A DNA stretch of 64,000 nucleotides, from the sequence record LR745206.1; one strand, 5' to 3'. Under the pieces are notes generated by a model. It saw only the letters and a program-made list of their open reading frames with translations. It searched no databases and was not told where the DNA came from. Below, piece by piece: positions 1-62,534 of the stretch. Both the position numbers and the translations under genes were made by a program. Position 1 is the stretch's first letter; each line of letters begins with the position of its first letter.

Positions 1-2
1 AG

Positions 3-12018: not shown

Positions 12019-12064
12019 TATTGCCGTTTTTTTTTTAATTATTCGAGTTTTTGACTCGATATAT

Positions 12065-12092: not shown

Positions 12093-12129
12093 AAGAAATG
12101 TTTGTTTTATTTAACTTTTTTTTCTTATC

Positions 12130-34290: not shown

Positions 34291-34877
34291 ATCTCATCAA
34301 ATCTTTTAATTTTAAATAAAGAACTAATATTATCCAATTTAGCATTTATCTCTGTTATTATCTGTTTATGAACTCTATTCATTGGTCTGTTTTTCTCAAG
34401 ATCAGATATTATATTAACAGTTTCTCTGAAATATTTATTCCTAAACCTCTCAGGTGCGGTAAAAGCATCCGATATATTTTGAAGTCTATCAGCTAATTTT
34501 ATAATAAGAGCATCTTCTGACATAAGATTCATTTTATCAATTAGATAATTTGTTTTACTTCCATCATAATCATGATCTATTTCATCACCAATAGATGTAA
34601 CTTCAATTACTAAATCAGCTACTCTTTTACCAAATCTAGATTTTATTTCTTCATATCCAACATCTTGGTCTTCATAACAATCCTCCAATACATCATGTAA
34701 TAAAGAAGCACATAATATATCTTCATCTTGATTATATCTTTTAACAATCCCATTAACCTTTTGAACATGAGCATCAAAATAAGGTTGATTTATAAATTTC
34801 CTAATCTGTTTTATATGTGCTTCTTTAGCAAAATTCCAGGCTAACTTTTCTTTATATGTTATTGGTCTGTTCGCCAT
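34287..34877 (-). CDS. HD-domain (p)ppGpp hydrolase-like protein (Mesh1/SAH family)
   Basis: PYFDAH, ASLLHDVLED, VADLVIEVT, IKLADRLQNI. Confidence 0.8.
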   Translation of the reverse strand: MANRPITYKEKLAWNFAKEAHIKQIRKFINQPYFDAHVQKVNGIVKRYNQDEDILCASLLHDVLEDCYEDQDVGYEEIKSRFGKRVADLVIEVTSIGDEIDHDYDGSKTNYLIDKMNLMSEDALIIKLADRLQNISDAFTAPERFRNKYFRETVNIISDLEKNRPMNRVHKQIITEINAKLDNISSLFKIKRFDEI

Positions 34878-36484: not shown

Positions 36485-37747
36485 ATGAAATTATTTAAAT
36501 ACATAGAATTTATAAATGAAAACTCAAAGAATGAGTATTCAATTCCTTCTTATGAAGAAGCTGTGGAGTTATGCTCAAAAGATGATGCTCCTTTTTATGA
36601 ATCAAAAATGATTGTTGATGGATATAATGTATCTGTCTTTAATTATAGACTTGCTCAATATAAAGATTTTGCTAATCCATTAGAACACAAACCAGAATTA
36701 AAAGGTTATGAAATGAGGGGGTTAACATTTGTATTCAATGAGGATGGTTCATTATTCAATAGATATGTTTTACTTGAGAAATTCTTTAACATAAACCAAG
36801 TTCCAGAATCAATGTATTCTATTGTTAAAAACTACAAAATAAAGTATGTTAATAATAAGGAAGATGGTTCTATTGCTTCATTTATTAAATTACCAAATGG
36901 TAAAATTGTTGGAAAGTCTAAAATGGGATTTGATAATGATCAATCAAATGGTATTAATAGAATTTATAATATAAATAAAGATGTTAAGAACTTAGTTAAT
37001 TGGTGTTTAGATAATGATATAGTTTCTATATTCGAATATGTTGCTCCTCACAATAGAATTGTTTTGAGATATACTACCGAAGACTTAATACTTTTAAGAT
37101 TAAGAAATAATAAAACTGGTAAACATATTGATATACAAGACCACTTAGATAAGATTGGTTCTATAAAGATTGCTCCTTTTGAGGATGATCACCAAGGGGA
37201 TTTAGATAAGTTGATTGAGTTGGTTGCTAAACAAATTGATAAAGAGGGTTGTATTGTACAAGCTGAGGATGCTAAAGGAAGAGATTTTTTCTTTAAGTTA
37301 AAAACTCCTTGGTACTGTGAACGACACGGTCTACTCACAGATGATATTTACAGAGAGCATATCATTATAGGATATATCCTAGATGATAAGATTGATGATA
37401 TTCTTGGTCAAATACCAGAAGAAGAGTTTGAAGCGCATGAAAGAATAAATAAGATTATACAAATAGTTAAAAAAGCTATATCTGACAAAATGACAGACAT
37501 AGAGAAATCTTATGAAGTTTTTGTCAGTATGGGTGAAAATAGAAAGGAATATGCTTTAAAATATATGGGTGTTGAACCAAACTTTGGTTATGTGATGAAT
37601 TTGGCTAATGGTAAAGATGTATATGATTTAGCTAAGGATTATATAAGAGATCATACTAAGAGGTTAATGATAGCTAGAGATTGGTTACAAGAAATTGATC
37701 CAACACTGTTTTTCCAAGACCCAGAGGAAGATGAAGAAGATAATTAA
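36485..37747 (+). CDS. rnlA: RNA ligase 1 (T4 Rnl1 family) with CTS-like N-terminus
   Basis: MKLFKYIEFINEN, YEMRGLTF, LEKFFN, NKEDGS motif I, FEYVAPHNRIVLRY, EGCIV, KLKT. Confidence 0.85.
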   Translation: MKLFKYIEFINENSKNEYSIPSYEEAVELCSKDDAPFYESKMIVDGYNVSVFNYRLAQYKDFANPLEHKPELKGYEMRGLTFVFNEDGSLFNRYVLLEKFFNINQVPESMYSIVKNYKIKYVNNKEDGSIASFIKLPNGKIVGKSKMGFDNDQSNGINRIYNINKDVKNLVNWCLDNDIVSIFEYVAPHNRIVLRYTTEDLILLRLRNNKTGKHIDIQDHLDKIGSIKIAPFEDDHQGDLDKLIELVAKQIDKEGCIVQAEDAKGRDFFFKLKTPWYCERHGLLTDDIYREHIIIGYILDDKIDDILGQIPEEEFEAHERINKIIQIVKKAISDKMTDIEKSYEVFVSMGENRKEYALKYMGVEPNFGYVMNLANGKDVYDLAKDYIRDHTKRLMIARDWLQEIDPTLFFQDPEEDEEDN

Positions 37748-39635: not shown

Positions 39636-41510
39636 ATGGCGAAAGACGTAATTATAGGAATTGACCTTGGGACCACAAATTCATGTGTTGCAGTGGTAGA
39701 AGGTGGAGAACCTATTGTAATCACAAATTCAGAGGGTAGAAGAACAACCCCATCAGTTGTCGGATTCACAGACAATGACAGAAAAATTGGAGATCCTGCT
39801 AAAAGACAAGCAGTTACTAATCCAACAAAAACAGTTTATTCGATTAAACGTTTCATTGGTAAGGACTTCTCAGTTTGTAAAGATGAAATTGGAAAGGTTC
39901 CTTATAAAGTAGTTAAAACAGGATCTAACGTACCTGGTGTTCAAATAGATGATAGAGTTTATACACCACAAGAAATATCAGCTATGATTCTACAAAAGAT
40001 GAAGAAGACAGCCGAAGAATATTTAGGACATGAAGTAACCAGAGCGGTTATTACTGTTCCAGCTTACTTTGGTGATGCTGAAAGAACTGCAACTATTGAA
40101 GCTGGTGAGATAGCTGGTTTGAAAGTTGAGAGAATTATAAATGAACCAACTGCCGCAGCTCTAGCATACGGACTAGATAAGAAAAATACAGATTCTAAGA
40201 TTCTTGTATTTGATTGTGGTGGTGGTACACATGACGTTTCTGTTTTAGAAATCGGTGATGGTGTTTTTGAAGTAAAATCTACTGATGGTGATACTCACTT
40301 AGGTGGTGATGATTTCGATAACGCAATTATTGATTGGATGGTATCAGAATTCAAATCAGACCATGATATGGATTTATCAAAAGATGCTATGGCTCTTCAA
40401 AGATTGAAGGAAGCTGGTGAGAAGGCAAAAATTGAACTATCATCTTCAACACAAACTGAGATTAATTTACCTTACATCACCGCTAAAGATGGTGTTCCTT
40501 TACACTTTGTTAAGAAATTGACAAGTGCTAAATTCGAACAAATGACTTCTAAGTTAGTAGATAGAACTATCGCTTGTGCGAAAAGTGCTCTTAAAAACGC
40601 AGGGTTAAAACCATCTGATATTGATGAAGTAATTCTTGTGGGTGGTTCTACTAGAATTCCAGCTATCCAAAATGCTATCGAGAAGTATATTGGTAAATCC
40701 CCAAATAAATCAGTAAACCCTGATGAAGTTGTTGCTCTTGGAGCCGCTATTCAAGGAGCTGTTTTATCCGGAGGAATTACAGATGTTTTACTTCTTGATG
40801 TTACACCACTTTCACTTGGTATTGAAACAATGGGGTCAGTAATGACCAGATTGATTGAGGCTAATACTACGATTCCGACCCGTAAGTCAGAAACGTTCTC
40901 AACAGCTTCAGATAATCAACCATCTGTTGAGATTCATGTTTTACAAGGTGAAAGACCAATGGCTAAAGATAACCGTTCACTAGGTAGATTCCATCTTGAT
41001 GGGATAATGCCAGCACCAAGAGGTATTCCTCAGGTTGAAGTGACATTGGATATTGATGCTAATGGTATACTTTCTGTATCCGCTAAAGATAAAGCTACTG
41101 GAAAAGAGAATAAGATTCGAATTGAAGGTGGTTCTCAATTATCTAAAGAAGAGATAGAAAGAATGAAGGCTGAGGCTGAAGCAAATTCAGAATCAGATAA
41201 ACTCGAAAGAGAAAAAGTTGACAAGGTTAATATGGCAGATAATTTAATCTTCCAAACAGAGAAACAAATGAAAGAATTTTCTGAGAAATTAACAGAAGAT
41301 GATAGGTCTTCTCTTAATTCAGACCTTGAGGAGTTGAGAAAGGCTCATTCTGAACAAGACGTTGATAAAATAGACGAAACATCTAATAAGTTAAACGAAA
41401 CTTGGTCAGCTATTAGCACTAGACTATATCAACAAACAAACGAATCAGAATCTACTGATGATGGTGATCCTGATGGTGGTGTGGAAGACACTTCTTATGA
41501 AGAAGTGTAA
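39636..41510 (+). CDS. dnaK: chaperone DnaK (Hsp70)
   Basis: [52 protein letters not shown]. Confidence 0.97.
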
Positions 41511-41515
41511 TAATG

Positions 41516-41544
41516 AAAAAACCCAGTCATTGACTGGGTTTTTT
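41516..41544. terminator. bidirectional intrinsic terminator
   Basis: AAAAAACCCAGTCA-T-TGACTGGGTTTTTT between convergent genes. Confidence 0.85.
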
Positions 41545-41546
41545 GT

Positions 41547-42803
41547 TTAATTACCTTCTGTGTAACTACCTTCTGTATCTCTAAAAACTCTAAAGTCCTT
41601 GTCTTCGAGTGAGTCATCATCATTTGTTAATGTATCAGTCTCAGTGTCTAAATAACAAACAGTATCCATATATGGATAATAATCCCAATCACCATCATCC
41701 AATTTAACAGTTATTATAGCTGATTTTGTTGTTGATCCATCAGTTATACTCTCATTCGGTGACATACTCTGTGATTTCTTATACCACCATCCATTTTTCT
41801 CAGCGAATTGTTTAAATAATTCAACATCGGAATCATGTGTGGTATATATTCTGTCCATAAAATTAGCAGCTTGTCCACCTATTTTAGCGTCCCATAATAA
41901 AGCTCTCCCCTTTATCATCTTACTAACATATCTACCATCTTTAATCTCACCATCATCATCATATAAAATTACTAAACTAACTTGTTTATTAAAACAATAA
42001 ATATCAAAATAGTCTGTATCAACTTCTGCCATACAAGAATTATTCAATGTACCACCACCATCAACATATGTATCTTCACCACTATTATCATACCAACGAG
42101 CAATTTCTTTACCCTTTACAATATCAAATTGTTTTAAGGCATCTTGTGCAAAATCATAAGTTGCTTTATATTGATTTGTAAATTCTTCAATTTCTTTATC
42201 AATAAATTTTATATCAGAAGCTTTTAAAATAGCTCTCACTAATCTACCAACCTTTATATTATTTCTTGATGTTGTCCATATTCTAGAATCATCAGCGTCC
42301 GTTGGTTCAATAGCTTCTTTATTTAAAACTGTTTTTTTCGGATCATCCACACCATATTCTTGAAACACAACATAAACTCTACCAGAGGTAGTACTAATTG
42401 TCTCTTTTAATACAAGTCCAATTATACCATGAGAAGGTGACCAAGGCTCTCCATTTGGCTTCTCATAATCTAAGGCTTCAAATATTCTATCATTACCTTT
42501 ACCATGTGTTAAGTATCTTTCAGAATCAATAACCTTCCAAGTTTCTGGTTTATCTTTTATAATTTCTTTAACTTTTCTATCTGGTGTGAAAGATACAGCG
42601 TCCTTCTCATCAGTGATATCAATATAATTATGAGTTATATTGATATCCTTTGAATAGGTGCTTAATAATTCAGATGCTATTCTATTGGTCTTCATCTTCG
42701 AAAGAAGACTAATGAATTTAGTAGAAAATACCACTTTTGATTCTAGTAATAGCTCATAAGCCATTTTCTCTGTGATATACTCATTATATTTTAATAAAAT
42801 CAT
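41547..42803 (-). CDS. conserved-looking phage protein with CTS-like N-terminus
   Basis: MILLKYNEYITE...LLES. C-terminal NSCM, GRALLW, FMDRIY, YPYMDT motifs. Confidence 0.65.
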   Translation of the reverse strand: MILLKYNEYITEKMAYELLLESKVVFSTKFISLLSKMKTNRIASELLSTYSKDINITHNYIDITDEKDAVSFTPDRKVKEIIKDKPETWKVIDSERYLTHGKGNDRIFEALDYEKPNGEPWSPSHGIIGLVLKETISTTSGRVYVVFQEYGVDDPKKTVLNKEAIEPTDADDSRIWTTSRNNIKVGRLVRAILKASDIKFIDKEIEEFTNQYKATYDFAQDALKQFDIVKGKEIARWYDNSGEDTYVDGGGTLNNSCMAEVDTDYFDIYCFNKQVSLVILYDDDGEIKDGRYVSKMIKGRALLWDAKIGGQAANFMDRIYTTHDSDVELFKQFAEKNGWWYKKSQSMSPNESITDGSTTKSAIITVKLDDGDWDYYPYMDTVCYLDTETDTLTNDDDSLEDKDFRVFRDTEGSYTEGN

Positions 42804-42828
42804 AAATTTTAAATTTAATTTCTCTGGT

Positions 42829-42837
42829 TATATATTA
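42829..42837 (-). promoter_or_regulatory. putative late promoter TAATATATA
   Basis: Exact motif upstream of 41547..42803. Confidence 0.55.
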
Positions 42838-42882
42838 TTTTAGGAAAATCAAAAGGTTATTTTATTATACAATTTCGAAAAA

Positions 42883-42891
42883 TAATATATA
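42883..42891 (+). promoter_or_regulatory. putative late promoter TAATATATA
   Basis: Exact motif upstream of 42897. Confidence 0.5.
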
Positions 42892-42896
42892 AATTA

Positions 42897-43157
42897 ATGA
42901 AGAAAATTCTATTTAAGGTTATGAAAAATAAAATAATAAATCTAATTAAGATATTAGGATTTGGACTTACTGAGATAGTAATAGATATTAAACTTTCAGT
43001 TGGGGACTTTCATTCAATTGAATGGGAGAAGTCAACTAATAAAGTATATTTACATATATTCAAATCAGGAGATCTAGATATTATGTTTGATTTTGAAGAA
43101 TTGGAAGAAGAAGATCAATTAAAAATCTATCAAAATTTAGCAATATTCTATAATTAA
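42897..43157 (+). CDS. hypothetical protein
   Basis: 86 aa ORF. Confidence 0.55.
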   Translation: MKKILFKVMKNKIINLIKILGFGLTEIVIDIKLSVGDFHSIEWEKSTNKVYLHIFKSGDLDIMFDFEELEEEDQLKIYQNLAIFYN

Positions 43158-44167
43158 AGACTATTCAACATTTGTATCATTTCCTTTTGTGGAAAAATAT
43201 CAAATTTACCTGTTCTAACTTGAGTGTGACTTCTTAAACCACCTAATTCGAACCATTTGTTATCATATTCAAACCAATCCTCATTATATATACCCTTATC
43301 TATCTCAATATCCCACCTATTTTGTAAATATAGTATTAATTTTCTAGTGCTTTCAAGTTGAGCATCTGTGTATTTTTCATAATGTTTAAATCCTCTAAAT
43401 GGTTTGTCTAACTCAACAACATCTGAATCATTAATAGGTCTATTAACATAATTATAAAACATACCATCTCTACCAAGTGTCAATGGACCATAATTACATA
43501 TCTCAATACCTATTGATTTTGAGTTTAAATCTTCACTATTTTTATGATTTATACCCAAGTGGTAAGCCCAGTATCTATCATCAAATGTTCGTAAAACTTT
43601 CCCATCCCATAAGGTATCATTCTTGGATGATGATTTTCTACCTATAAGGTAAGGAGTAGCAACTCTTAATGGTTTTGGATTACCATCTTTATCTAAGACA
43701 GGATTACCTTTCTTATCTTTTACATAGTCTCTTTCCCATCCACCAATAGTCCAATCTGGTCTAGATCCACCAGCAGTGTGATGTAACCATATTGTATCTT
43801 TTTTAGTTTCTGTTTTATAATATTCATCATCTTCTAGAAAACAATCATATATTGTTAAAGAATCCTCTCCAATATATGATATCTTAAATGGTATATCTAT
43901 TATTGGATCTGGTCTAAATTCTGGTGTTTCAACCGCTTCTGATTTATTACTATTATAATTGGTAATCTGACTCCATGTTTGTGGACCAACCACACCATCA
44001 GACTTTATACCAACACCTCTTTGGAAGTTAGTAACTGATACTAATGTATTTTGTCCAAAATTACCATCTATTTTACCTTTGTGGTATCCGTATTCCTTTA
44101 ATTTTGTTTGCATCCAACGAACATCCTCACCAGACATCCTTAACATTATAATTCTTTGGAGTTTCAT
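43154..44167 (-). CDS. endolysin-like: peptidoglycan-binding domain plus N-acetylmuramoyl-L-alanine amidase (Amidase_2)
   Basis: DGNFGQNTLVSVTNFQRGVGIKSDGVVGPQTW, WLHHTAG, SIGIEICN, SHTQVRTGKFD. Confidence 0.85.
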   Translation of the reverse strand: MKLQRIIMLRMSGEDVRWMQTKLKEYGYHKGKIDGNFGQNTLVSVTNFQRGVGIKSDGVVGPQTWSQITNYNSNKSEAVETPEFRPDPIIDIPFKISYIGEDSLTIYDCFLEDDEYYKTETKKDTIWLHHTAGGSRPDWTIGGWERDYVKDKKGNPVLDKDGNPKPLRVATPYLIGRKSSSKNDTLWDGKVLRTFDDRYWAYHLGINHKNSEDLNSKSIGIEICNYGPLTLGRDGMFYNYVNRPINDSDVVELDKPFRGFKHYEKYTDAQLESTRKLILYLQNRWDIEIDKGIYNEDWFEYDNKWFELGGLRSHTQVRTGKFDIFPQKEMIQMLNSL

Positions 44168-44682
44168 AGACTGTTATTATTTTTATATCTTTCTTTATGT
44201 TTTAGATCTAAATAAGCTTTTAGATCGGCATATGTAACATTACCTGGATTATTTAAGATATTATCAGCATTACCATCTGGTTGCACTTCTAACTTCCTCA
44301 ATTCCTCATTCTTAACCCTTTCCTCATATTGCTCTTCAACATTTTTTAAAATGTGTCCAAGATAGAAATCTATACCCTTTTCATGTACAATTTTATTATC
44401 GAATTTGAATAGAAATTCTTCAAAATTATGATCATAATAAACAGCAAAAGTTGAATCCTTAATAAAATGGTCAGCGTAGAATTTTATATCACCAACATTA
44501 CCTTGTCCATAAATTGTTGTTTTATATTGATTGCTGTAGAAAAAACTAAATTGATCCTTATCATTATACGCTCTTTTACCATTTTTTTCAACGGTAGCAA
44601 CTAATCCAAGATTTACTTTAAAATATCTTGATTTTTTGAATTCTAGAACTGTTTGATATGATGAAACTACATGTAAAGCCAT
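44164..44682 (-). CDS. hypothetical protein
   Basis: 172 aa ORF coupled to the amidase. Confidence 0.6.
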   Translation of the reverse strand: MALHVVSSYQTVLEFKKSRYFKVNLGLVATVEKNGKRAYNDKDQFSFFYSNQYKTTIYGQGNVGDIKFYADHFIKDSTFAVYYDHNFEEFLFKFDNKIVHEKGIDFYLGHILKNVEEQYEERVKNEELRKLEVQPDGNADNILNNPGNVTYADLKAYLDLKHKERYKNNNSL

Positions 44683-44710
44683 ACATTATTTATTAAATAA
44701 AATGTGCTTC

Positions 44711-45412
44711 CTATGGTCTATTTACTCTTTCTATGAAATTGATATGAATTTTATTATCTTTTAATTCTATATCATATTTCCATCTCCAATTTTGACCACC
44801 AAGATATCTAAACTTTGGCTCAAATAATTTTCTGATGAATGTTTTAACATCACTTAGTAATGTTTTGGATTCAAAACCATCTTCTATTGGTAATAGAACA
44901 ACACCATTTCTATCTTGTGAATATTTAAATGCTCTGGTTACCTTTGTATACCTATGATCTAAGTTTCTTTTTATAACATCTAGAAATTCATAGAATCCTT
45001 CTTTTTCAACAGGAACCTCTTCATTGGATTCTTCATCTATTAAATGATAAACTATATTAATTTTATTATTAGATGATATATCAATTCTTTCAATGTAAGT
45101 TTCTCCAAATTCAGAAAGCCTATCATTAGACTCTTCTAACTCTTCAAAAATATTTTTAATTAAATTTATATCAACAAAGTCTGTTATTTTCTTATTAAGT
45201 GTTGCTATATAACCAGGTTTTCTATAATATTGGTTTGGATTATCTGATGTTGTATAAGCTCTTCTTGATTCATCTGTATTAGTATTACGATCAGAAAAAT
45301 ATACCTTTTTAATATCCAATTCTAAACCAAAATCAATTAAGTGTATAAATATATCATTGAAATCATGATATTCTTTGGTATGTGATTCATTAAATGATTT
45401 AAGATGTTTCAT
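44711..45412 (-). CDS. hypothetical protein, CTS-like N-terminus
   Basis: MKHLKSFNES. Confidence 0.7.
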   Translation of the reverse strand: MKHLKSFNESHTKEYHDFNDIFIHLIDFGLELDIKKVYFSDRNTNTDESRRAYTTSDNPNQYYRKPGYIATLNKKITDFVDINLIKNIFEELEESNDRLSEFGETYIERIDISSNNKINIVYHLIDEESNEEVPVEKEGFYEFLDVIKRNLDHRYTKVTRAFKYSQDRNGVVLLPIEDGFESKTLLSDVKTFIRKLFEPKFRYLGGQNWRWKYDIELKDNKIHINFIERVNRP

Positions 45413-45969
45413 TACTCAGTTTCAATTTCGAATTCTTCGTCCTCACCGCCAAATTTCTCATCCATCTCTATTTTAAGATCGATGAGGAATTCCTCATCTA
45501 TGTTTTTAACTTCAATGTTTTTAGAGATTTGACCAAGCACTTCAAATGTATCCAAATCATATTTTTTTAGTTTGATATAACACTTCTCTATATCCTCTAT
45601 ACTAAAATCCTTTTCTTTATCTTTTGGGATAGCTTCTTTTATATCCACCATGATTATAAGAGCATAAGTATTAGTATCATCTGAAAATTTAATAGTTAAT
45701 GTATCATACATCTTAGAATATTTAGAAACCTCAGAACTTTCCAACCTAACACCTAAATCCTTAAATGTCATTTTATCTCCATTTTGATTTAATTTTTTAA
45801 TTTTTGTTGGATCTTCTTCTGCTTCTGGTGGATTATCTATATCACCTTCTTGAAACTCAAACATCTTATCAACTTTTACTTTAATTTGTTGTAATAATGT
45901 TGATATATAAGACTCTGGGGTCTCATGTAAGTCTTCTGTTATAAATTCTATATACTTTCTAATCTTCAT
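45412..45969 (-). CDS. acidic hypothetical protein, CTS-like N-terminus
   Basis: MKIRKYIEFITE. Confidence 0.7.
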   Translation of the reverse strand: MKIRKYIEFITEDLHETPESYISTLLQQIKVKVDKMFEFQEGDIDNPPEAEEDPTKIKKLNQNGDKMTFKDLGVRLESSEVSKYSKMYDTLTIKFSDDTNTYALIIMVDIKEAIPKDKEKDFSIEDIEKCYIKLKKYDLDTFEVLGQISKNIEVKNIDEEFLIDLKIEMDEKFGGEDEEFEIETE

Positions 45970-45973
45970 ACAA

Positions 45974-45982
45974 TATATATTA
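45974..45982 (-). promoter_or_regulatory. putative late promoter TAATATATA
   Basis: Exact motif 4 nt before the ATG. Confidence 0.55.
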
Positions 45983-46064
45983 AAATTAGATAGTCTTTTT
46001 TATTTTTAAGCAATAAATAGACAAATTAGAGAAATAGATAAGCAATATATAAACTATACAATCA

Positions 46065-46092
46065 AAACTTATCAATTAATAAAATGTATAAA
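46065..46092 (+). promoter_or_regulatory. putative middle promoter AAACTT-N16-TATAAA
   Basis: Upstream of prkA. Confidence 0.45.
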
Positions 46093-46111
46093 TAAAAAAT
46101 AAAGGATAAAT

Positions 46112-48034
46112 ATGAATCTATTAAACACCATTAAAAAAGATTTTACTCAATCTGAAAAGGATATTTCGATACAAGACTACTTAAAATTATGTAAAGAAGA
46201 TAAAAAAATATATGCAACACCGGCTGAACGTGTTTTAGACGTTATTGGTGAAGCAGAGATGGTTGATACAAAATCGGATGAAAGATTAAGTAGAATATAC
46301 TCTAATCGAATAATTAAAAGATATAAAACCTTCTCAGATTTCTATGGAATGGAAGATACAATCGAACAAATCGTATCCTTTTTCAGACATGCATCACAAG
46401 GACTCGAAGAAAAGAAACAAATTCTTTATCTATTGGGACCAGTAGGTGGTGGTAAATCATCATTAGCCGAAAGACTTAAACAATTAATAGAGAAAAGTCA
46501 TATTTATGTCCTTGTTGCTGATGGTGTGGTGTCACCAGTTTGGGAAAACCCATTAGGATTATTTTCAAATTATAGATCTGAATTGGAAGATGAATATGGT
46601 ATCTTAAAAAGATACATACCATCTTGTCCTTCACCTTGGGCTACTAAGAGATTAGCAGAGTTTGGTGGTGATATTTCCAAATTCACAGTAAGAAGAATTA
46701 AAATGTCTATTCAATCACAAATTGGTATCTCTAAAACAGAGCCAGGTGATGAGAATAACCAAGATATATCAGCACTTGTTGGTAAAATTGATATACGTAA
46801 ATTAGCTGAGTATCCACAAAATGATGCTGATGCTTATAACTACTCAGGAGCACTTTGTAGAGCAAATCAAGGACTTATGGAGTTTGTTGAGATGTTCAAA
46901 GCCCCGATTAAAATGTTAAATCCACTTTTAACTGCGACACAAGAAGGTAACTATAATGGTACTGAAAATTTACCAGCTATTCCTTTCCAAGGTATAATTT
47001 TGGCTCACTCAAATGAAAGCGAGTGGGAATCATTTTCTAATGATAGAAAGAATGAAGCTTTCTTAGATAGGGTTTATATTGTAAGAGTTCCTTATTGTCT
47101 TAGAATAGATGAGGAGGTTCAAATTTACGAAAAATTATTACAAAGTTCTTCATTATCCGAATCACCTTGTGCACCACAAACATTGGACTTATTAGCTCAA
47201 TTTTGTATAATGACAAGAATGAAAGATCCAGAAAATTCAATACTATATTCTAAAATGAGAATTTATAATGGTGAGAATTTGAAAGAATCTGACCCAAAAG
47301 CTAAATCTCTACAAGAGTATAAAGATAATGCTGGTATAACAGAAGGGATGGATGGTGTATCAACAAGATTCGCATTTAAAGTTCTTTCTAAGGTTTTTAA
47401 TCACGATACAGAAGAAGTTGCTGCTAATCCAGTTCATTTATTTTATGTTTTAGAACAAGAAATAATAAAAGCTCAATTACCTAGAGATGTTGAAGAATAT
47501 TATCTAAATATTCTAAAATCAACAATAACTACTAGATATGCTGATTTTATCGGAGATGAAATACAAAAAGCTTATGTTGATTCATATCAAGAATATGGTC
47601 AAAATCTATTTGAGAGATATATTACTTATGCTGACCATTGGTGTCAAGATAATGATTATCGTGATCCAGAAACAGGTCAACAGTTTGATAGACAAGCACT
47701 TAATGAAGAGCTTGAGAAAATTGAGAAACCAGCTGGTATTGCAAATCCTAAAGATTTCAGAAATGATGTTGTTCAATTTTATTTAAGACATAAAGCTAAA
47801 AATAGTAAAGCACCATCTTGGGATTCTTATGAGAAAATTAAAAATGTTATAGAAAAAAGAATATTCTCTAAAACAGAAGATCTTATTCCTGTTATATCAT
47901 TCACTAGTAAAGCGTCTAAGGATGATGAACATAAACATTCAGAATTTGTTAGTAGAATGAAGAAAAGAGGATATACTAATAAACAAATTCAATTATTAAC
48001 TGATTGGTATCTAAGAGTTAGAAAATCCAGTTAA
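46112..48034 (+). CDS. prkA: PrkA/YeaG family AAA+ serine kinase/ATPase
   Basis: GPVGGGKS, KTEPGDENNQDIS, ANQGLMEFVEMFKAPIK, AHSNESEW, GMDGVSTRF. Confidence 0.95.
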   Translation: MNLLNTIKKDFTQSEKDISIQDYLKLCKEDKKIYATPAERVLDVIGEAEMVDTKSDERLSRIYSNRIIKRYKTFSDFYGMEDTIEQIVSFFRHASQGLEEKKQILYLLGPVGGGKSSLAERLKQLIEKSHIYVLVADGVVSPVWENPLGLFSNYRSELEDEYGILKRYIPSCPSPWATKRLAEFGGDISKFTVRRIKMSIQSQIGISKTEPGDENNQDISALVGKIDIRKLAEYPQNDADAYNYSGALCRANQGLMEFVEMFKAPIKMLNPLLTATQEGNYNGTENLPAIPFQGIILAHSNESEWESFSNDRKNEAFLDRVYIVRVPYCLRIDEEVQIYEKLLQSSSLSESPCAPQTLDLLAQFCIMTRMKDPENSILYSKMRIYNGENLKESDPKAKSLQEYKDNAGITEGMDGVSTRFAFKVLSKVFNHDTEEVAANPVHLFYVLEQEIIKAQLPRDVEEYYLNILKSTITTRYADFIGDEIQKAYVDSYQEYGQNLFERYITYADHWCQDNDYRDPETGQQFDRQALNEELEKIEKPAGIANPKDFRNDVVQFYLRHKAKNSKAPSWDSYEKIKNVIEKRIFSKTEDLIPVISFTSKASKDDEHKHSEFVSRMKKRGYTNKQIQLLTDWYLRVRKSS

Positions 48035-48105
48035 GAGAATGGCGATCTCATTTAGATTATCCAGGTTTATAACCCCAGGTATTTGGGGGTATCCTGATGA
48101 CTTTA
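48035..48105 (+). other. GC-rich structured intergenic element
   Basis: GAGA/TCTC hairpin, then CAGG..ACCCC/GGGGGT..CCTG extended hairpin, between prkA and yeaH. Confidence 0.35.
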
Positions 48106-48156
48106 GTATTAAGCAAAAAATTGCGTTAAGAAAATCAAAAATTAAGAAAATATTCA

Positions 48157-49419
48157 ATGTCAATAAATATAGTAGATAGAAGAAAGAATACTAAAGGGAA
48201 ATCCTCTGAGAATCGTCAGAGGTTCCTTAAACGCGTTGAAGGTCAAATTAAAAAGGCATTACCGGATATTATAAAGGGTACTAATATTAAAGATATTACA
48301 TCATCTAAAGATAAAGTTAAGGTTCCAATAAAAGGAATAAAAGAACCACAATTTACATATGATAAAGATAGTGGTGATAAGAAAAATGTACATCCTGGTA
48401 ATAAGGAATTTACGGAAGGTGATAAAATAAAAAAGCCAGATGATGGTAAAGGTAAGGGAGGTCGAAAAGGATCTAATGATCCAGCTACATCCGAAGATGA
48501 TTTTACTATATCAATAAGTAGAGAAGAATTTCTTGATTATTTTTTCCAAGATTTGGAATTACCAGATATGGTAAAAAAACATTTAGACTCAATAGTTGAT
48601 TTCAAACAAAAGAGAGCAGGTTATTCAAACCAAGGAACTCCAAATAGATTAAATGTTGTTAGATCTTATAAAAACTCTATGGCTCGTAGAATGGCTACAG
48701 GTATATTCTTCGATAAAAGAATTAAAGAGATAGAAGAAAGTCTTAAAGATGATAAACTATCAGATGTTGATAGAATAATACTTGAAAAAGAATTAGATAA
48801 GTTCAAAAAAATGAAGCTATCTGTTTCTTTTATGGAAGAGGTTGATTTACAATATAATAATTTTGATAAAGTAGCTATACCAACTACATCAGCGGTAATG
48901 TTTTGTATAATGGATATTTCTGGATCAATGGGTGAAAAAGAAAAAGATATATCTAAAAGATTCTTTATGTTATTATATATGTTTTTAACCAAACAATATG
49001 AAAGAATTGAGATAGTTTTTATAAAACATCACACTCAAGCCAGTGAGGTTTCTGAGGAAGATTTTTTTAATTCAAAGGAATCAGGTGGGACAGTTGTTGC
49101 ACCAGCTCTTGAGTTAATGAGAGAAATAATTAAAGAAAGATATTCAAAAAGTTGGAATATTTATGCAGCTCAGGCATCCGATGGTGATGTTTGGAATAAA
49201 TCAGATGCTGATGATTGTTATAATCTATTAAATGGTGAGATATTAAATGATATTCAATATATGGTTTATATTGAAGTTTGTAGAGAAAATGATGGTGATT
49301 TGTGGAATAATTATAGATCTTTATCAGAGAGTAGAAAGAATTTTGAGGTTGGAAAAATATCAGATGTTAGTCAAATATGGCAAGTGTTTCAAGACTTCTT
49401 TAAAAAGAAATCAATATAA
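48157..49419 (+). CDS. yeaH: YeaH/YhbH family vWA-domain protein
   Basis: IVDRR...NRQRF, PGNKEF, LELPDM, CIMDISGSM, SGGTVVAPAL, QASDGD. Confidence 0.93.
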   Translation: MSINIVDRRKNTKGKSSENRQRFLKRVEGQIKKALPDIIKGTNIKDITSSKDKVKVPIKGIKEPQFTYDKDSGDKKNVHPGNKEFTEGDKIKKPDDGKGKGGRKGSNDPATSEDDFTISISREEFLDYFFQDLELPDMVKKHLDSIVDFKQKRAGYSNQGTPNRLNVVRSYKNSMARRMATGIFFDKRIKEIEESLKDDKLSDVDRIILEKELDKFKKMKLSVSFMEEVDLQYNNFDKVAIPTTSAVMFCIMDISGSMGEKEKDISKRFFMLLYMFLTKQYERIEIVFIKHHTQASEVSEEDFFNSKESGGTVVAPALELMREIIKERYSKSWNIYAAQASDGDVWNKSDADDCYNLLNGEILNDIQYMVYIEVCRENDGDLWNNYRSLSESRKNFEVGKISDVSQIWQVFQDFFKKKSI

Positions 49420-49420
49420 T

Positions 49421-50920
49421 ATGAATAAAGAAGAATTAAAGAAAATATTCAGTAAATCAGATTGGGATAACGATACGATAATTCAAGCTAATGATATTGT
49501 ATCAAGAATAGCTTCTGAATATCTTGGACTTGATACATATCCAAATCAATTTGAAATTATATCATCAGAACAGATGTTAGATGCTTATTCATTGATTGGA
49601 TTACCATTATCTTACAACCATTGGAAATTTGGAAAAGATTTCGTTATAAACGAGAATCGATATAAAAAGGGTAGAATGGGTTTAGCATATGAGTTGGTAA
49701 TTAATTCAAATCCTTGTATATCATACAATATGGAAGATAACACAACCTGTTTGATGTTATTAGTATTGGCACATGCTGCTTATGGACATAATCACTTTTT
49801 CAAAAATAATTATCTATTTAAACAATGGACTCAAGCTGACTCTATAATAGATTATATGTTATTTGCTAAGAAATTTATTGCTGAGTGTGAAGAAAAATAT
49901 GGATATGAAGAGGTTGAAATGGTTTTAGATTCTTGTCATGCATTAATGAATTATGGGGTTGATAAGTATAAAAAACCAAGAAAACTATCACCTATTGAGG
50001 AACATAGTAGATTGAAGAAGAAGATTGAGGATGATAGAATTCTTTTAAATGATATTTGGAGAACAATTCCTGATAAGAAAGATAAAAGGTCTAAAAGAAC
50101 TAGATTCCCATCTCAACCAGAGGAGAATATACTTTATTTTATAGAGAAGAATTCACCTAAATTAAAAGAATGGCAACGTGAAATTGTTAGAATAGTTAGA
50201 AAGATATCTCAATATTTTTACCCACAAGGACAAAGTAAAGTTATTAATGAAGGTTGTGCTACATTCTCACATTTTGAAATAATAAACAAGATGTATGATG
50301 AGGGATATTTGGATGGTGGCTTTATGTTGGAGTTTATGCACCACCATTCTAATGTTGTTAATCAACCAGGATTTGATTCTAAATATTATTCGGGATTAAA
50401 CCCATACACATTGGGATTTAATATATTCAAAGATTTGAAGAGAATGTCATTAGAACCAACAAAAGAAGATTTAGCATGGTTTCCTAATATAGCAGGAAAA
50501 GGCAATTGGCAAGAAACATTTAGATATATTGTTGAGAACTTCAAAGATGAAACCTTTGTTTTACAATATCTTTCACCTAAAGTGATGAGGGATATGAAAT
50601 TATTTGAAATAAGTGATGAGGAAGGAAGTAAACATTATGAAGTAACTTCTATACATAATGATAGAGGTTATAAAAAAGTTAGACAATCACTTTCAGAATC
50701 ATATAATAGAAGCAGATATGTTCCGGATATACAAGTTTATAAAGTAGATGTTTTTGGTACAAGATCATTAACACTTGAATATACACCAATAAACAATAGA
50801 GATTTGGATTTAAGTGATATTGATAATGTTTTACCACATGTTAAATATTTATGGGGATTTCCTGTAAGAATGGTAAGTCGTGAAGATGGTAAGCTTGTTA
50901 ATATATCATCAATAGATTAA
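49421..50920 (+). CDS. spoVR: SpoVR/YcgB family protein
   Basis: Start ATG 49421. GLDTYPNQFE, YNHWKFGK, LAYELVIN, AHAAYGHNHFF, NEGCAT, NPYTLG. Confidence 0.93.
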   Translation: MNKEELKKIFSKSDWDNDTIIQANDIVSRIASEYLGLDTYPNQFEIISSEQMLDAYSLIGLPLSYNHWKFGKDFVINENRYKKGRMGLAYELVINSNPCISYNMEDNTTCLMLLVLAHAAYGHNHFFKNNYLFKQWTQADSIIDYMLFAKKFIAECEEKYGYEEVEMVLDSCHALMNYGVDKYKKPRKLSPIEEHSRLKKKIEDDRILLNDIWRTIPDKKDKRSKRTRFPSQPEENILYFIEKNSPKLKEWQREIVRIVRKISQYFYPQGQSKVINEGCATFSHFEIINKMYDEGYLDGGFMLEFMHHHSNVVNQPGFDSKYYSGLNPYTLGFNIFKDLKRMSLEPTKEDLAWFPNIAGKGNWQETFRYIVENFKDETFVLQYLSPKVMRDMKLFEISDEEGSKHYEVTSIHNDRGYKKVRQSLSESYNRSRYVPDIQVYKVDVFGTRSLTLEYTPINNRDLDLSDIDNVLPHVKYLWGFPVRMVSREDGKLVNISSID

Positions 50921-50927
50921 ATGAAAA

Positions 50928-51140
50928 TTAAATACCGAGTGATTTTATTTTTAGGTGTCTATCTAATAGTTTATAATCCTCTTTACCCATTGATAGTGTT
51001 ATCTTTTTATCTTTATAATGATCACCTTTTATATAGTCTATAAAAACTGAGTTTGTATAGTAAGTAACTTCTAATATTTCAACATCATCAAAGAAGCTAA
51101 TATCAATATCATATAATTCACCATATATTCTAACAGTCAT
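50928..51140 (-). CDS. small protein with C-terminal tag
   Basis: Ends DRHLKIKSLGI. Confidence 0.6.
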   Translation of the reverse strand: MTVRIYGELYDIDISFFDDVEILEVTYYTNSVFIDYIKGDHYKDKKITLSMGKEDYKLLDRHLKIKSLGI

Positions 51141-51546
51141 ATTTTATAATCTCCACACCAGCTTCTTTTAGAAACTCCAAACCAGAAGCATCTTTATATT
51201 CTTTTATATAAACTAATCGTTTTATACCAGATTGTAAAATCAATTTAGAGCAGTCTTTACAAGGTGAATGTGTTTGATATAAAGTACCACCTTCACAAGA
51301 ATGTCCATGTCTAGCACATTTAAGAATAGCGTTAGCTTCTCCATGTATTACATACCAATTAGTGGTACCATCTTCTATCTCACAAGCGTTATCGAACCCT
51401 GTGGGTGTACCATTATATCCATCTGATATAATCATACCATTCTTAACTATAAGAGCTCCTACTTGTTTCCTATTACAATGTGAGAGTGTCGCCCACTCTT
51501 TAGCCATATTCAAATAGGTTCTATCGTATCTTTCTTGTTTATCCAC
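51130..51546 (-). CDS. dCMP deaminase (ComEB-like)
   Basis: Probable GTG start. VGALIV, GYNGTP, HGEANAI, PCKDC. Confidence 0.9.
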   Translation of the reverse strand: MDKQERYDRTYLNMAKEWATLSHCNRKQVGALIVKNGMIISDGYNGTPTGFDNACEIEDGTTNWYVIHGEANAILKCARHGHSCEGGTLYQTHSPCKDCSKLILQSGIKRLVYIKEYKDASGLEFLKEAGVEIIKYDC

Positions 51547-53641: not shown

Positions 53642-54031
53642 TTATTTCTTTATAACTTCATCTATCTTTCTGTCTCTCTCTAATACAATGAATTTACTTT
53701 CTAAGAATTTTTCTATTTCTTTTGGTAATGAAACTTGCTGCTTTTTTAACTCATCATAATAAGGTTTACCTAAAACATTAATTATTGATATAATCATAGC
53801 AACATTAGAATCCAACCAACCTTCCACTTCTAGATCTTCCCCTAAAATATGGTAGGTTGTTTTTTGAGGTTGTATTGAATACCCAACAAAATTACCAGAA
53901 GAGTTTGATACAGTTATATTTGATCCACTTGAAATTGTTACATTTGATCCAGTTCCATAGATAGAGCTTGTTGTGCCTGTGTAGATAGAGCTTGTGTGTA
54001 CATTACTACCATTTATATTTACGAATCCCAT
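53642..54031 (-). CDS. hypothetical protein, S/T-rich N-terminus, C-terminal tag
   Basis: Ends ERDRKIDEVIKK. Confidence 0.65.
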   Translation of the reverse strand: MGFVNINGSNVHTSSIYTGTTSSIYGTGSNVTISSGSNITVSNSSGNFVGYSIQPQKTTYHILGEDLEVEGWLDSNVAMIISIINVLGKPYYDELKKQQVSLPKEIEKFLESKFIVLERDRKIDEVIKK

Positions 54032-54930: not shown

Positions 54931-55368
54931 TTAATCTAAAACCGAATTTAACTTGATATCTCTTTTATATGAATTTATTACACTTTCTAATGATTGTGTA
55001 TTTATATCCTTATCCAACATAGTTTTAATATTCTGTATTGAAAAACTACAATCTATATATGATAGATCATTTCCATCCCAAGAAAATGGTGATGTTTTAA
55101 ATAGTGTATTCTTTACTTGTAAAATATCAAATCTTATCACATCACCAACTCTATTTTGATGTGATATGATAAGTATATCAGTATTCACTATATCATCATA
55201 CCCAACATCAGGCATATCTTGAAATTTACAGTTTATTATATCATTTACAATTTCATATCTCTCAATATGTGCTGTTTTAGTCTCACCAGATTTTGTTATG
55301 AATCTAGCATCATAGAGACTTGTATAAATTGGCTCAATCGATTTATGTGCAAAGTGTGGTAATCCCAT
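54931..55368 (-). CDS. tail-tube-like protein with C-terminal tag
   Basis: MGLPHF...EPIYTSLYDARF...QNRVGDVIR, ends KRDIKLNSVLD. Confidence 0.5.
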   Translation of the reverse strand: MGLPHFAHKSIEPIYTSLYDARFITKSGETKTAHIERYEIVNDIINCKFQDMPDVGYDDIVNTDILIISHQNRVGDVIRFDILQVKNTLFKTSPFSWDGNDLSYIDCSFSIQNIKTMLDKDINTQSLESVINSYKRDIKLNSVLD

Positions 55369-57236: not shown

Positions 57237-57264
57237 TATATATAGTAAAATAAAAACTTTGTTT
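57237..57264 (-). promoter_or_regulatory. putative middle promoter AAACAA-N16-TATATA
   Basis: Upstream of the topoisomerase large subunit, identical architecture to 59019..59046. Confidence 0.5.
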
Positions 57265-57508
57265 AAGAGTTTAACAATTCTGATATCTTTCTATCTCTGT
57301 CTATACCCCTTAACACACCTACTATATTTGATTCATATCCAGAATAAATTGGGTGAAGATAATCTTCCTCATCAACATAAGATAATTGCCAATGATTTGG
57401 ATAATTTGGCTTTTCCCACAATATATGTTTACCATTGAAAGTTGGTTTAGACCACTCATCAAACTCTTCGCAATAAATAAAACCATATTTCTCAGGAAAT
57501 TCACTCAT
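57263..57508 (-). CDS. small protein with C-terminal tag
   Basis: Ends DRDRKISELLNS. Confidence 0.6.
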   Translation of the reverse strand: MSEFPEKYGFIYCEEFDEWSKPTFNGKHILWEKPNYPNHWQLSYVDEEDYLHPIYSGYESNIVGVLRGIDRDRKISELLNS

Positions 57509-60432: not shown

Positions 60433-61569
60433 ATGAAAGAAGAATTGCTAAAGCTTATTGAGGAAAAATCACCAGGAGCAAGACCACTATATCTTGTTAT
60501 ACGTGGTTCACATGCTTATGGAACTAATATAGAAACATCTGATACTGATTATGCTGGTGTTTTTATACAATCAATAGAAGATATTTTTGGTCTAAACTAT
60601 AAAGAACAGATAAATGATGATACTAACGATACCGTTATTTATGAACTTCGTAGATTTCTAGGATTACTCGCTAGCAATAACCCAACTGTATTAGAATTAC
60701 TTAATACTCCAGAAGATTGTATTATCTACAAAGATCCTATTTTTGATTTGATTTTAAAGAATAGAGATATATTTATTACCAAAGTTTGTGATAATTCATT
60801 TGGTGGATATGCACGACAACAAATTGGTAAAGCAAAGGGTCAAAATAAAAAACAAAACTGGGAGCAGTCCAAAGTAATACGTAAAACTCCATTGGATTTT
60901 TGCTATCTATTACAAAATGAAAAATCTATACCATTAGTTGATTATCTAGATAAACATAAGATGGATCAAAGATTCTGTGGATTATCAAATGTGCCACATA
61001 GTAGAGATACTTATGCTTTATTTTATGATTATAACTTATCAAAGTTACCATTCCCACATTTAGTAGGTAAGGTAAATCAAGGATTTAGAGGAATTGTATT
61101 TGAAGATTCAAATGAGGTTAGGCTAAGTTCTATACCATTTAACTGCCCTGTTGAATATTTCATTGGTCATATCTCTTATAATAAAGATGGATATTCACAA
61201 CATTGTAAAGATTATAATTCTTATCAAACTTGGATAAATGAAAGAAATGAGGCTAGATGGGTTGATGTTAAATCACATGGTCAAAAAATAGATGGTAAGA
61301 ATATGATGCACTGTGTTAGATTAATTGGAATGGCTCGTGAGATTGGTGAAGGTAAGGGTATTTTAGTAAGAAGAGATAACGCAAAAGAACTTATTTCGAT
61401 TAGAAGAGGTGAAGTTGACTTACAAACATTAATTGATAATGTTGAATCTGATATTCGAGAAATTGATCAAATTTTCAAAAATTCCAATCTACCAGATAAA
61501 GTTGATGAAAATTTTGTACATGAATTATTGGTTAAAGTTAGAAAAGAAGTTTATAAATTAAATAGATAG
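60433..61569 (+). CDS. Pol-beta superfamily nucleotidyltransferase (RlaP/NrdC.11-like)
   Basis: RGSHAYGTNIETSDTDYAGVF (GS...DxD), NNPTVLELL, KNMMHCVRL. Confidence 0.8.
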   Translation: MKEELLKLIEEKSPGARPLYLVIRGSHAYGTNIETSDTDYAGVFIQSIEDIFGLNYKEQINDDTNDTVIYELRRFLGLLASNNPTVLELLNTPEDCIIYKDPIFDLILKNRDIFITKVCDNSFGGYARQQIGKAKGQNKKQNWEQSKVIRKTPLDFCYLLQNEKSIPLVDYLDKHKMDQRFCGLSNVPHSRDTYALFYDYNLSKLPFPHLVGKVNQGFRGIVFEDSNEVRLSSIPFNCPVEYFIGHISYNKDGYSQHCKDYNSYQTWINERNEARWVDVKSHGQKIDGKNMMHCVRLIGMAREIGEGKGILVRRDNAKELISIRRGEVDLQTLIDNVESDIREIDQIFKNSNLPDKVDENFVHELLVKVRKEVYKLNR

Positions 61570-61573: not shown

Positions 61574-62191
61574 ATGGGTATTTTGGAGATTATGATTATA
61601 TTTTTTATGGGTATTTTGATTGGTGGTTTTACAACAAAACTATTATCAAAATATTCTGATAAATTACAAAGGGAGAAATTAATTGATAACATAAATTCAC
61701 AATACAAACAGATTCTTAGAAGTGTTTCTAAAGGTGAGGCTAAATTTAAGAATAGGGTAAATAATACTGTATTCATTTCATCTAATCTAAAAGAACATGG
61801 TGATGTTGATGTTATTTACATGATGGATAATAAAGATATAGCCATATTTAAAAATAATAAATGTATTTATACATCTGAATCAGTTAACAGTGAAGTTGTA
61901 AAGGATATAACAGTAACTATTGATAATAGATATCAAAATCAAATAAATGATGTTGTTGATATTCTTGGATTCAAATTTTATAGAGAAGAGTTTGAAAAGT
62001 CATTCAAAGGTGAAATAAAATCTCTTGATATGACTAAATTGGATTTATCAGATATTGATAAAATTAAAAATGAAAATGACTCCAAGTTCACGATAAATGA
62101 TGTATTGGATAAGATAAGTAAAAGTGGGATGGATAGTCTTACATTTGAAGAAAGAATATTTCTTGATGAATATAGTAAAAACAATGGATAG
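61574..62191 (+). CDS. membrane-anchored protein with DUF6576-like C-terminal motif
   Basis: N-terminal hydrophobic helix, C-terminal INDVLDKISKSGMDSLTFEERIFL. Confidence 0.55.
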   Translation: MGILEIMIIFFMGILIGGFTTKLLSKYSDKLQREKLIDNINSQYKQILRSVSKGEAKFKNRVNNTVFISSNLKEHGDVDVIYMMDNKDIAIFKNNKCIYTSESVNSEVVKDITVTIDNRYQNQINDVVDILGFKFYREEFEKSFKGEIKSLDMTKLDLSDIDKIKNENDSKFTINDVLDKISKSGMDSLTFEERIFLDEYSKNNG

Positions 62192-62534
62192 GATAGTAAA
62201 TCTAACTCCATTCTCTATACTTTCTCAAGTAAATGAAATAGAACATCACACTTTATTAGAGATTACCACTATCGTAATAGAAAATAGTGGTAATTTTTTT
62301 TACATAAAAGATGAAGTTGAAAAGATATTAGATGTCTCTAATATGCCTCAGTATATTAAAGAAGATTGGATTAATTATAACAAAAAAGAATTAAATATTG
62401 CTTTATTGAATCACCAGATAAAGAATCTCGAAAATATTCTTGAATATAAAAGACCATATGATGAAAAGGATGAAGAAGCTCTTATTTTATTGAAATCTTT
62501 GAGAAGGGATTTAATTATCAACGGGCTTATCTAA
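62184..62534 (+). CDS. hypothetical protein with C-terminal tag variant
   Basis: Start ATG 62184, ends LRRDLIINGLI. Confidence 0.6.
   Translation: MDRIVNLTPFSILSQVNEIEHHTLLEITTIVIENSGNFFYIKDEVEKILDVSNMPQYIKEDWINYNKKELNIALLNHQIKNLENILEYKRPYDEKDEEALILLKSLRRDLIINGLI

Follow-up and report, generated by a model that had tools for sequence, protein, structure and literature searches.

A complete PrkA/YeaG-YeaH-SpoVR module of Bacteroidota type in a ~635-kb phage genome and its possible role in the turnover of host protein

The DNA analysed here, referred to as the window, is a stretch of 64,000 nucleotides (nt) of record LR745206.1, and coordinates are positions in this window unless another record is named. 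Three adjacent genes lie on its forward strand in the order prkA-yeaH-spoVR (46112-50920), in a region containing no runs of N. The first, a homologue of prkA/yeaG (spdA; 46112-48034, +), encodes a protein of 640 amino acids (aa) in which an AAA+ ATPase domain precedes the kinase-like C-terminal domain of PrkA. The second, a homologue of yeaH (DUF444; 48157-49419, +), encodes 420 aa with a basic, Gly-rich N-terminal half modelled with low confidence and a C-terminal von Willebrand factor A (vWA) domain, and the third, a homologue of spoVR/ycgB (49421-50920, +), encodes 499 aa. The original prediction, made from the sequence alone, had described three intact, full-length genes in the bacterial order, and this was borne out by family matches over the full profiles and by the arrangement of 77 out of 80 bacterial loci; the same order on one strand was found in 59 of 80 loci from the viral database IMG/VR, and nearly all the remaining loci of both sets were cut by contig ends.

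PrkA carries its two domains in the expected succession, PF08298 (E-value 1.5e-169, profile positions 1-357 of 358) and PF06798 (5.8e-66, 1-252 of 255), and scored 1112.7 bits against the NCBIfam equivalog NF011999 (cut-off 576), covering positions 2-644 of 644. Its Walker A motif reads GPVGGGKS (residues 109-116); the core GGGKS is invariant in a 65-row alignment, and conservation of the first three positions is 90% or more. The Walker A lysine is essential in Bacillus subtilis PrkA, where it is K108. The only solved relative of PrkA is PDB entry 9xip, "Serine protein kinase" (E-value 2e-53). YeaH matched PF04285 (E-value 5.8e-147, 2-418 of 418) and NF003707 (523.8 bits, cut-off 396), and it stayed below the cut-off of the Bacillus spore type TIGR02877 (225 vs 468), such that it is assigned to the Gram-negative YeaH subtype. 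SpoVR matched PF04293 (E-value 2.3e-156, 1-405 of 407), PF24755 (SpoVR_C, 1.8e-18) and NF008737 (748.5 bits, cut-off 679).

As delimited mechanically, the spoVR open reading frame (ORF) opens at 49247, inside yeaH. Since homology to the family begins at about residue 58 of that ORF and an ATG is found at 49421, one base past the yeaH stop, this ATG is likely the true start; the correction leaves the outer coordinates 46112-50920 unchanged. The spacers are thus 122 nt between prkA and yeaH (48035-48156, +) and 1 nt between yeaH and spoVR. Minus-strand genes diverge from prkA upstream (45412-45969 and beyond) and converging genes are located downstream (50928-51140 and beyond), and because of this layout the trio is regarded as a transcription unit of its own, with the AT-rich divergent intergenic region of 142 nt (45970-46111) as the presumed promoter region. 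A scan for the sigma-70 consensus returned 41 sites vs 42.7 in shuffled sequence, terminator counts were likewise equal to those of shuffled sequence, and no promoter was assigned; Bacteroidota and phage promoters are outside the scope of the tool. The 122-nt spacer was also considered as a conserved RNA element and rejected, as its fold gave a z of -0.36 against shuffles and no Rfam match, and no conserved element was detected in it. In a strain 90-95% identical, present in a sequencing run of another study (run X1), this spacer is swapped for unrelated letters.

The window matches LR745206.1 with 100% identity. This record, an "uncultured phage", has 634,780 bp and ranks among the four largest circular genomes curated by Al-Shayeb et al. 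2020 (PMC7162821); Bacteroidetes hosts were predicted for this group, the Mahaphage clade, in the same work (PMC7162821). The genome encodes the N-terminal domain of a large terminase (Terminase_6N, PF03237, E-value 6e-22); in the three ~635-kb genomes Terminase_6N was found and Terminase_6C (PF17289) was not. Around the trio the window encodes DnaK, an amidase endolysin, a dCMP deaminase, NusG, a 5'-3' exonuclease, both type II topoisomerase subunits, a T4-type RNA ligase 1, RlaP and many ORFs without a family, a set of predicted functions typical of large phages.

As the genes are of cellular type, with a PrkA 64-68% identical to bacterial proteins, we considered whether the locus could be host DNA misassembled onto a phage contig, or a recent passenger without function. 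The record of Enterobacter phage LAU1 (MN688132.1, 30.8 kb) illustrates the concern: it holds YeaG and YeaH at its first bases (1-3290), with a YeaG ~64% identical to the window PrkA, and from their position these look like the bacterial flank of a prophage and not like phage genes. For the window such an origin is extremely improbable. The GC content at third codon positions (GC3) of the trio is 0.16-0.19, similar to the 21 other long ORFs of the window (0.177 +/- 0.024) and far from the prkA of the nearest bacterial homologues, those of Cytophagales (0.46-0.76). The order DnaK, a 418-aa, a 172-aa and a 185-aa protein, and prkA is repeated, to the contig limits, in 12 IMG/VR loci stemming from different samples (L001-L010, L014 and L015), and the amidase gene is also present in three of them (L001-L003). 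In run X1, the stretch 45408-51300 is covered in unchanged order by Logan contigs with 90-95% identity to the window; one of them bridges the left junction (45408-46388) and another extends beyond the right end of spoVR, and the listed differences between them and the window are mostly spaced at multiples of three bases. Moreover, the best bacterial PrkA is 68% identical, phage copies reach 86%, and the phage copies are under purifying selection, as described below. We therefore conclude that the operon is not chimeric with host DNA, which was the condition that the original prediction had named as its own refutation.

The best bacterial matches belong to Cytophagales and Gammaproteobacteria. 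PrkA does not discriminate between them (65-68% identity for both), whereas YeaH is 50-58% identical to Cytophagales vs 40-45% to Gammaproteobacteria, and SpoVR 57-61% vs 50-56%. The nearest cellular relatives are thus the Cytophagales operons, found in Pontibacter, Rhodocytophaga, Cesiribacter, Flammeovirgaceae and Tunicatimonas with the same gene order. In trees of the concatenated proteins, built by quick searches under LG+G4 (65 rows) and the site-heterogeneous posterior mean site frequency (PMSF) C20 model (41 rows), the copies from huge phages and Cytophagales formed one clade under both models, with 100% support in the Shimodaira-Hasegawa-like approximate likelihood ratio test (SH-aLRT). 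Inside it, the window clade branches outside the Cytophagales crown, as sister to a group of Cytophagales and the phage loci L017 and L018, which are nearer to Cytophagales than to the window; an approximately unbiased (AU) test on fixed topologies (LG+F+G4) rejected a topology in which the two phage groups are monophyletic (p 0.0024). A rougher FastTree of PrkA and YeaH placed the copy of phage record LR756504 at the base. Phylogeny against host homologues, put forward beforehand as a check, thus groups the phage copies with Cytophagales, and as judged by these comparisons the module is of Bacteroidota type, in agreement with the published host prediction (PMC7162821). The nesting of Cytophagales among phage lineages could reflect repeated capture from unsampled relatives, movement of the module from phages into bacteria, or a long-branch artefact.

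How common the module is in the phylum was estimated from samples, which are not proofs of absence: 400 genomes evenly drawn from other Bacteroidota and 301 Cytophagales. A YeaH match was found in one of the 400, and that one is distant (30% identical); the SpoVR family was present in five, all of distant types; and the close-type module was present in ~17 of the 301 Cytophagales (~6%). By these counts the module is rare in Bacteroidota. The link with sporulation is irrelevant to a module of this type.

We then looked at the distribution of the trio in phages. A tblastn search of 50,697 annotated phage records gave relatives of PrkA in 17, and the complete trio was found in five. Besides LR745206, where it is contiguous, the trio is present in LR756502.1 (642 kb), the closest complete relative, with a PrkA 84% identical. 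There, prkA-yeaH (273831-277136) and spoVR (519947-521443) are ~245 kb apart, which implies that adjacency is unnecessary in phages, as it is in E. coli. In LR756504 (636 kb) inserted ORFs come between the genes. Within 108000-125000 of LR756504.1 (L161), the locus occupies 4168-12590 on the minus strand, and five extra same-strand ORFs split the trio, and two of these, lying between yeaH and spoVR, encode N6/N4 DNA methylases; SpoVR is encoded there by one ORF of 635 aa, in which an in-frame insert of ~125 aa had no match in Pfam. The two other records are LR756511 (595 kb), of a distant type with 24-27% identity, and the cultured Ralstonia phage RsoM2USA (343.8 kb), in which ORF28-30 form a contiguous trio.

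Further copies came from IMG/VR, where conserved peptide patterns were used, such that close relatives only were retrieved. They were found in 128 contigs, 80 of which were fetched (L001-L080), and besides the 59 complete trios in the same order, 18 of these were cut by contig ends. The clade of the window (L001-L015) has PrkA 78-86% identical and a GC content of 0.28-0.34, except L009 (0.47). That locus (IMGVR_UViG_3300005662_007764) keeps the gene order of the window despite its GC content, and L003 (IMGVR_UViG_3300036770_008729) lies on a 281-kb contig labelled "provirus" by IMG/VR. Further low-GC lineages (L016-L020) and a large separate clade (L021-L080, 60-66% identical) complete the set. 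Two contigs of this clade, of 342 kb and 322 kb, are 92% and 90% complete according to CheckV and carry terminases, for which reason we take its members as real jumbo phages of 150-340 kb. The trio is thus spread over several other lineages (among them IMG/VR phages of 320-340 kb, RsoM2USA and LR756511), which answers the question of its distribution among jumbo phages raised when the locus was first described.

Some of these loci show insertions or particular neighbours. In L052 (322,647 bp), a homing endonuclease of HNH-NUMOD3 type lies between prkA and yeaH (7927-8448) and an EF-G gene is located downstream. In L001 an opposite-strand ORF of 496 aa with no known function (9290-10780, -) is placed between yeaH and spoVR, and L014 has a 1-kb gap within the operon. 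A Zeta-toxin-like kinase and an Mtd_N protein are encoded just upstream of the trio in L042 (4047-4724). In one marine virome study, Zeta toxin and spoVR were both abundant viral genes (PMC8940887), and the L021-L080 clade may be the source of both.

The sequences of the phage proteins are well preserved. Considering the columns invariant among 29 cellular homologues (11 Cytophagales and 18 Gammaproteobacteria), PrkA keeps 278 of 292, YeaH 88 of 96 and SpoVR 140 of 148 (~95%), and this conservation speaks for an activity that stayed the same rather than one that was retargeted. The ratio of nonsynonymous to synonymous substitution rates (dN/dS) among phage copies was 0.02-0.14 in all three genes, and 0.02-0.09 for prkA within the phage clade; these values come from 33 pairwise comparisons, 30 finite and three saturated, in which dS was often >1. 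Low dN/dS at high dS implies that the trio has been retained by selection through a long evolution inside phage genomes. We therefore tentatively regard it, from sequence evidence, as a functional PrkA/YeaG(SpdA)-YeaH-SpoVR(YcgB) module of Bacteroidota (Cytophagales) type, long resident in ~635-kb phages.

What the module might do for a phage has to be approached from its bacterial counterparts. The genes yeaG, yeaH and ycgB are mutual best cofitness partners, with r > 0.7, in six bacteria (bioRxiv 10.1101/072470). When cells starve, cytoplasmic proteins are broken down in a largely nonspecific way, which provides amino acids and ATP for new synthesis; this degradation requires YeaG, whose gene was renamed spdA (PMC13684143). 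Purified Bacillus anthracis PrkA is an AAA+ ATPase of a YME1/FtsH-like clade that oligomerises with ATP; it showed no detectable protease activity and is without protease active-site residues (PMC13001217), from which it follows that the picture lacks a peptidase partner. The phage YeaH has the metal-ion-dependent adhesion site (MIDAS) motif DISGS at residue 253, whose D, S and S are invariant in the alignment. In its AlphaFold model, with a predicted local distance difference test (pLDDT) score of 74, Foldseek matched the C-terminal region, starting at about residue 230, to vWA domains (best E-value 9.5e-07), including the NorD vWA domain in NorQD complexes (3-6e-05), and the YeaH model is thus that of a vWA/MIDAS protein similar to those which pair with AAA+ rings.

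Based on these data, the reading that we favour, with some reserve and by analogy with E. coli, is that the phage module serves the turnover of the host proteome. The trio would be expressed as one transcription unit during infection, and the phage would bring a self-sufficient, ATP-driven machine of YeaG type that turns over cytoplasmic proteins as YeaG does in starving E. coli, such that host proteins would yield amino acids and energy for phage protein synthesis in a long infection of nutrient-poor hosts. PrkA would act as a hexameric, FtsH/YME1-like AAA+ unfoldase, YeaH as a vWA/MIDAS adaptor docking on it, and SpoVR, given its zincin-like model, possibly as the missing peptidase. We infer the host-proteome substrate, the benefit for the phage, the formation of a complex and the peptidase activity of SpoVR. 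Such a role suits a phage of very large size, the cycle of which in nutrient-poor hosts is presumably long. It is also in line with the earlier proposal that the phage uses the trio as a protein-remodelling machine, and this part of the proposed function agrees with the best evidence now at hand, on starvation proteolysis (PMC13684143), on the PrkA ATPase (PMC13001217) and from the YeaH vWA/MIDAS model. Two mechanistic analogies can be drawn. In FtsH/YME1 an AAA+ ring is fused to an M41 zincin, to be compared with a YME1-like PrkA and the zincin-like model of SpoVR, but the phage parts are three separate polypeptides; MoxR-vWA pairs such as NorQ-NorD offer a parallel to a YeaH vWA domain that would dock on an AAA+ ring.

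The case for SpoVR rests on its predicted structure (pLDDT 79.6, predicted template modelling score 0.77). Foldseek of this model vs the PDB gave no match at E <=0.001. In a VIA-align search, nearly all the top 45 matches were catalytic domains of MA-clan zinc metallopeptidases (zincins), with ~170-209 residues aligned: DUF885 proteins had Z scores of 10.3, 10.2 and 9.3 (best 3o0y, 200 aa, root-mean-square deviation 4.0), M1 aminopeptidases and LTA4 hydrolase 8.4-9.2, and M3, M32, thermolysin, LasB, ACE and DPP III 5.6-8.3. The invariant His118 and His123 stand in the sequence AHAxxGHN on helix 109-129, and the invariant Glu157 on the next helix. Together with the zincin-like predicted fold, these residues suggest a metal site across the SpoVR/YcgB family, beyond the phage copy, and SpoVR could be the peptidase that PrkA lacks. 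A search of SpoVR against Pfam at E <=10 returned only SpoVR families.

Several observations weigh against host-proteome turnover and should be considered together. The Z scores of about 10 come from a largely helical model, and the tool warns that such scores may reflect a common arrangement only. The HExxH motif was not found in SpoVR, where Ala occupies the position of the catalytic Glu; the SpoVR profile had no match among PDB sequences at E <=10; and hhalign of SpoVR vs the DUF885 alignment gave a probability of 0.55%, which is not significant. For these reasons, the helical model, the missing HExxH, the Ala for Glu and the non-significant profile comparisons, we do not class SpoVR as a zincin and take the fold as a lead only; it is in the lack of HExxH and of significant peptidase sequence similarity that SpoVR differs further from FtsH/YME1. 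The protease activity of PrkA is itself disputed, since ATP-dependent proteolysis was reported for the B. subtilis protein (PMC9512850), and the B. anthracis protein showed no detectable protease activity (PMC13001217). In E. coli the YeaG-dependent degradation proceeds slowly, at a few % of protein per hour (PMC13684143), and it may be too slow to matter unless infection is long. Most of the hosts are probably without a module of their own, a statement on frequency at the level of the phylum only. Finally, none of the RNA sequencing runs contains the locus.

An alternative, already raised in the original prediction as manipulation of host dormancy or persistence, is that the trio works as a signalling device, kinase-like or a regulatory AAA+, that controls the state of the host, holding a starved or stationary cell in a dormancy-like state or pushing it out of one to let replication go ahead. 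In works cited by PMC13684143 and PMC2686479, YeaG is a Ser/Thr kinase that cells need to adapt when nitrogen starvation persists, and it belongs to the RpoS regulon; the trio was read as a signalling pathway by Price et al. (bioRxiv 10.1101/072470), deletion of prkA in Bacillus has pleiotropic transcriptional effects (PMC13001217), and the C-terminal kinase-like domain (PF06798) is fully conserved in the phage. However, the kinase activity of B. subtilis PrkA was not reproducible and its P-loop is degenerate (PMC9512850), and the clearest known phenotype is bulk proteolysis (PMC13684143). We consider this role unlikely; it is compatible with proteome turnover, which is itself a change of state.

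The genes upstream of the trio bring up another possibility. The neighbourhood at 39636-45969, which is context and not necessarily part of the module, starts with a full-length DnaK/Hsp70 gene (39636-41510, +; PF00012, E-value 3.4e-250), whose GC content of 0.368 is the highest in the window; between dnaK and prkA, minus-strand genes encode proteins of 418, 172, 233 and 185 aa with no known function, and the amidase endolysin with its peptidoglycan-binding domain, identified by Pfam, is at 43154-44167 (-). In addition, two high-scoring ClpP homologues are encoded in LR745206.1 (record positions 123568-124089 and 75197-75721). With the adjacent DnaK and two ClpP genes, the phage invests broadly in proteostasis, which also counts in favour of the turnover of host protein; alternatively, the module could work with them in the quality control of phage proteins, remodelling or clearing assembly scaffolds and misfolded giant proteins. 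The dnaK gene lies 4.6 kb upstream of the trio in conserved synteny, AAA+/vWA pairs such as NorQ/NorD are dedicated maturation chaperones (PMC9976466, PMC13036017), and the YeaH model matches the NorD vWA domain. Yet the cellular module acts on no phage protein, the conservation of the invariant residues speaks against retargeting, and unrelated phages hold the trio without the same neighbours (the flanks of L042, L052 and RsoM2USA differ), so that a function in quality control seems to us rather improbable.

Large phages carry many anti-defence genes. The trio might accordingly break down or inactivate proteins used by the host for defence, or those of rival phages, and nonspecific proteolysis would remove defence proteins too; this is a general pattern only. 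None of the three proteins had a match in the PADLOC library, and their strong conservation (dN/dS as given above) is unlike that of fast-evolving arms-race genes. Counter-defence or exclusion is thus quite improbable, and more so than a role in quality control.

Other elements of the window deserve a mention. Small ORFs share a C-terminal motif, R/K-x-acidic/basic-K-I/L-x-x-hydrophobic-hydrophobic, as in ...RDRKIxxLL.. and ...RNDKINKII.. Six strict matches end <=4 residues from the stop vs 0.07 expected from the internal rate, with a pattern chosen post hoc; they are at 15821-16105, 21488-21892, 26435-26686(-), 30867-31136, 53642-54031(-) and 57263-57508(-), and looser versions are at 27910-28146(-), 28235-28780(-), 54931-55368(-) and 62166-62534. 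This motif is probably the "C-terminal tag" for which the trio had been proposed as a partner, a proposal left unsupported, as the trio proteins are without the motif and the cellular module works without such tags. A predicted RNA repair set is also present, composed of an HD-domain protein, the T4-type RNA ligase 1 and the RlaP nucleotidyltransferase (34287-34877(-), 36485-37747 and 60433-61569).

Compared with the named systems, the phage module shares its three families and domain architectures with E. coli YeaG(SpdA)-YeaH and YcgB, as its proteins pass NF011999, NF003707 and NF008737, and its PrkA is ~64% identical to enterobacterial YeaG. However, E. coli separates yeaGH from ycgB, whereas the window module is phage-borne and forms one contiguous unit of phage-like codon composition, and the RpoS/NtrC control of enterobacteria cannot be assumed for it. 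The trio of RsoM2USA is only 56%, 42% and 51% identical and sits on a long separate branch; in the paper on that phage, SpoVR and PrkA are listed in separate functional tables and the module was unrecognised (PMC8504454). The Thermus phages phiYS40, TMA, phiLo, Lalka and MN1, which infect a phylum different from that of the host predicted for the window phage, have a PrkA-family AAA+ "serine kinase" and a DUF444/vWA relative with 25-29% identity; SpoVR was not found by tblastn in those records.

The trio is a host-derived auxiliary module in a phage. Single genes of the set were already annotated in phages: the Thermus "serine kinase", the SpoVR and PrkA of RsoM2USA, and the spoVR that was counted as a viral "sporulation" auxiliary gene in the virome of an oxygen-minimum zone (PMC8940887). 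In the literature library that was searched, no paper was found on the complete module in phages, on its spread in jumbo phages, or on a link with YeaG-dependent proteolysis. Among bacterial modules whose function is poorly understood, YeaG/PrkA-YeaH-SpoVR is one of the most widespread, and the link between YeaG and starvation proteolysis dates only from 2026. Here the whole module is found under purifying selection in the largest known phages, and it is also present in the culturable jumbo phage RsoM2USA. The phage module makes the open question testable, as it offers a compact and self-contained three-gene version, free of host regulation, usable to reconstitute the mechanism, and the zincin-like fold predicted for SpoVR points to a possible seat of the peptidase activity that is missing.

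At the ecological level, the hypothesis is that phages recycle the protein of their hosts in addition to the DNA, and it would explain why a "sporulation" gene such as spoVR appears as a viral auxiliary gene in marine communities that do not sporulate (PMC8940887). In a bolder form, which we consider doubtful, several unrelated lineages of large phages would have repeatedly captured and kept the whole module, and would use it to break down host protein in bulk, much as in autophagy, as the protein equivalent of recycling host DNA. If this were true, the module would be a split FtsH-like protease with SpoVR as a divergent zincin peptidase, and huge phages would be both a reservoir and a vector of the module, from which the patchy copies of Cytophagales, nested as they are among huge-phage lineages in the trees, may have come.

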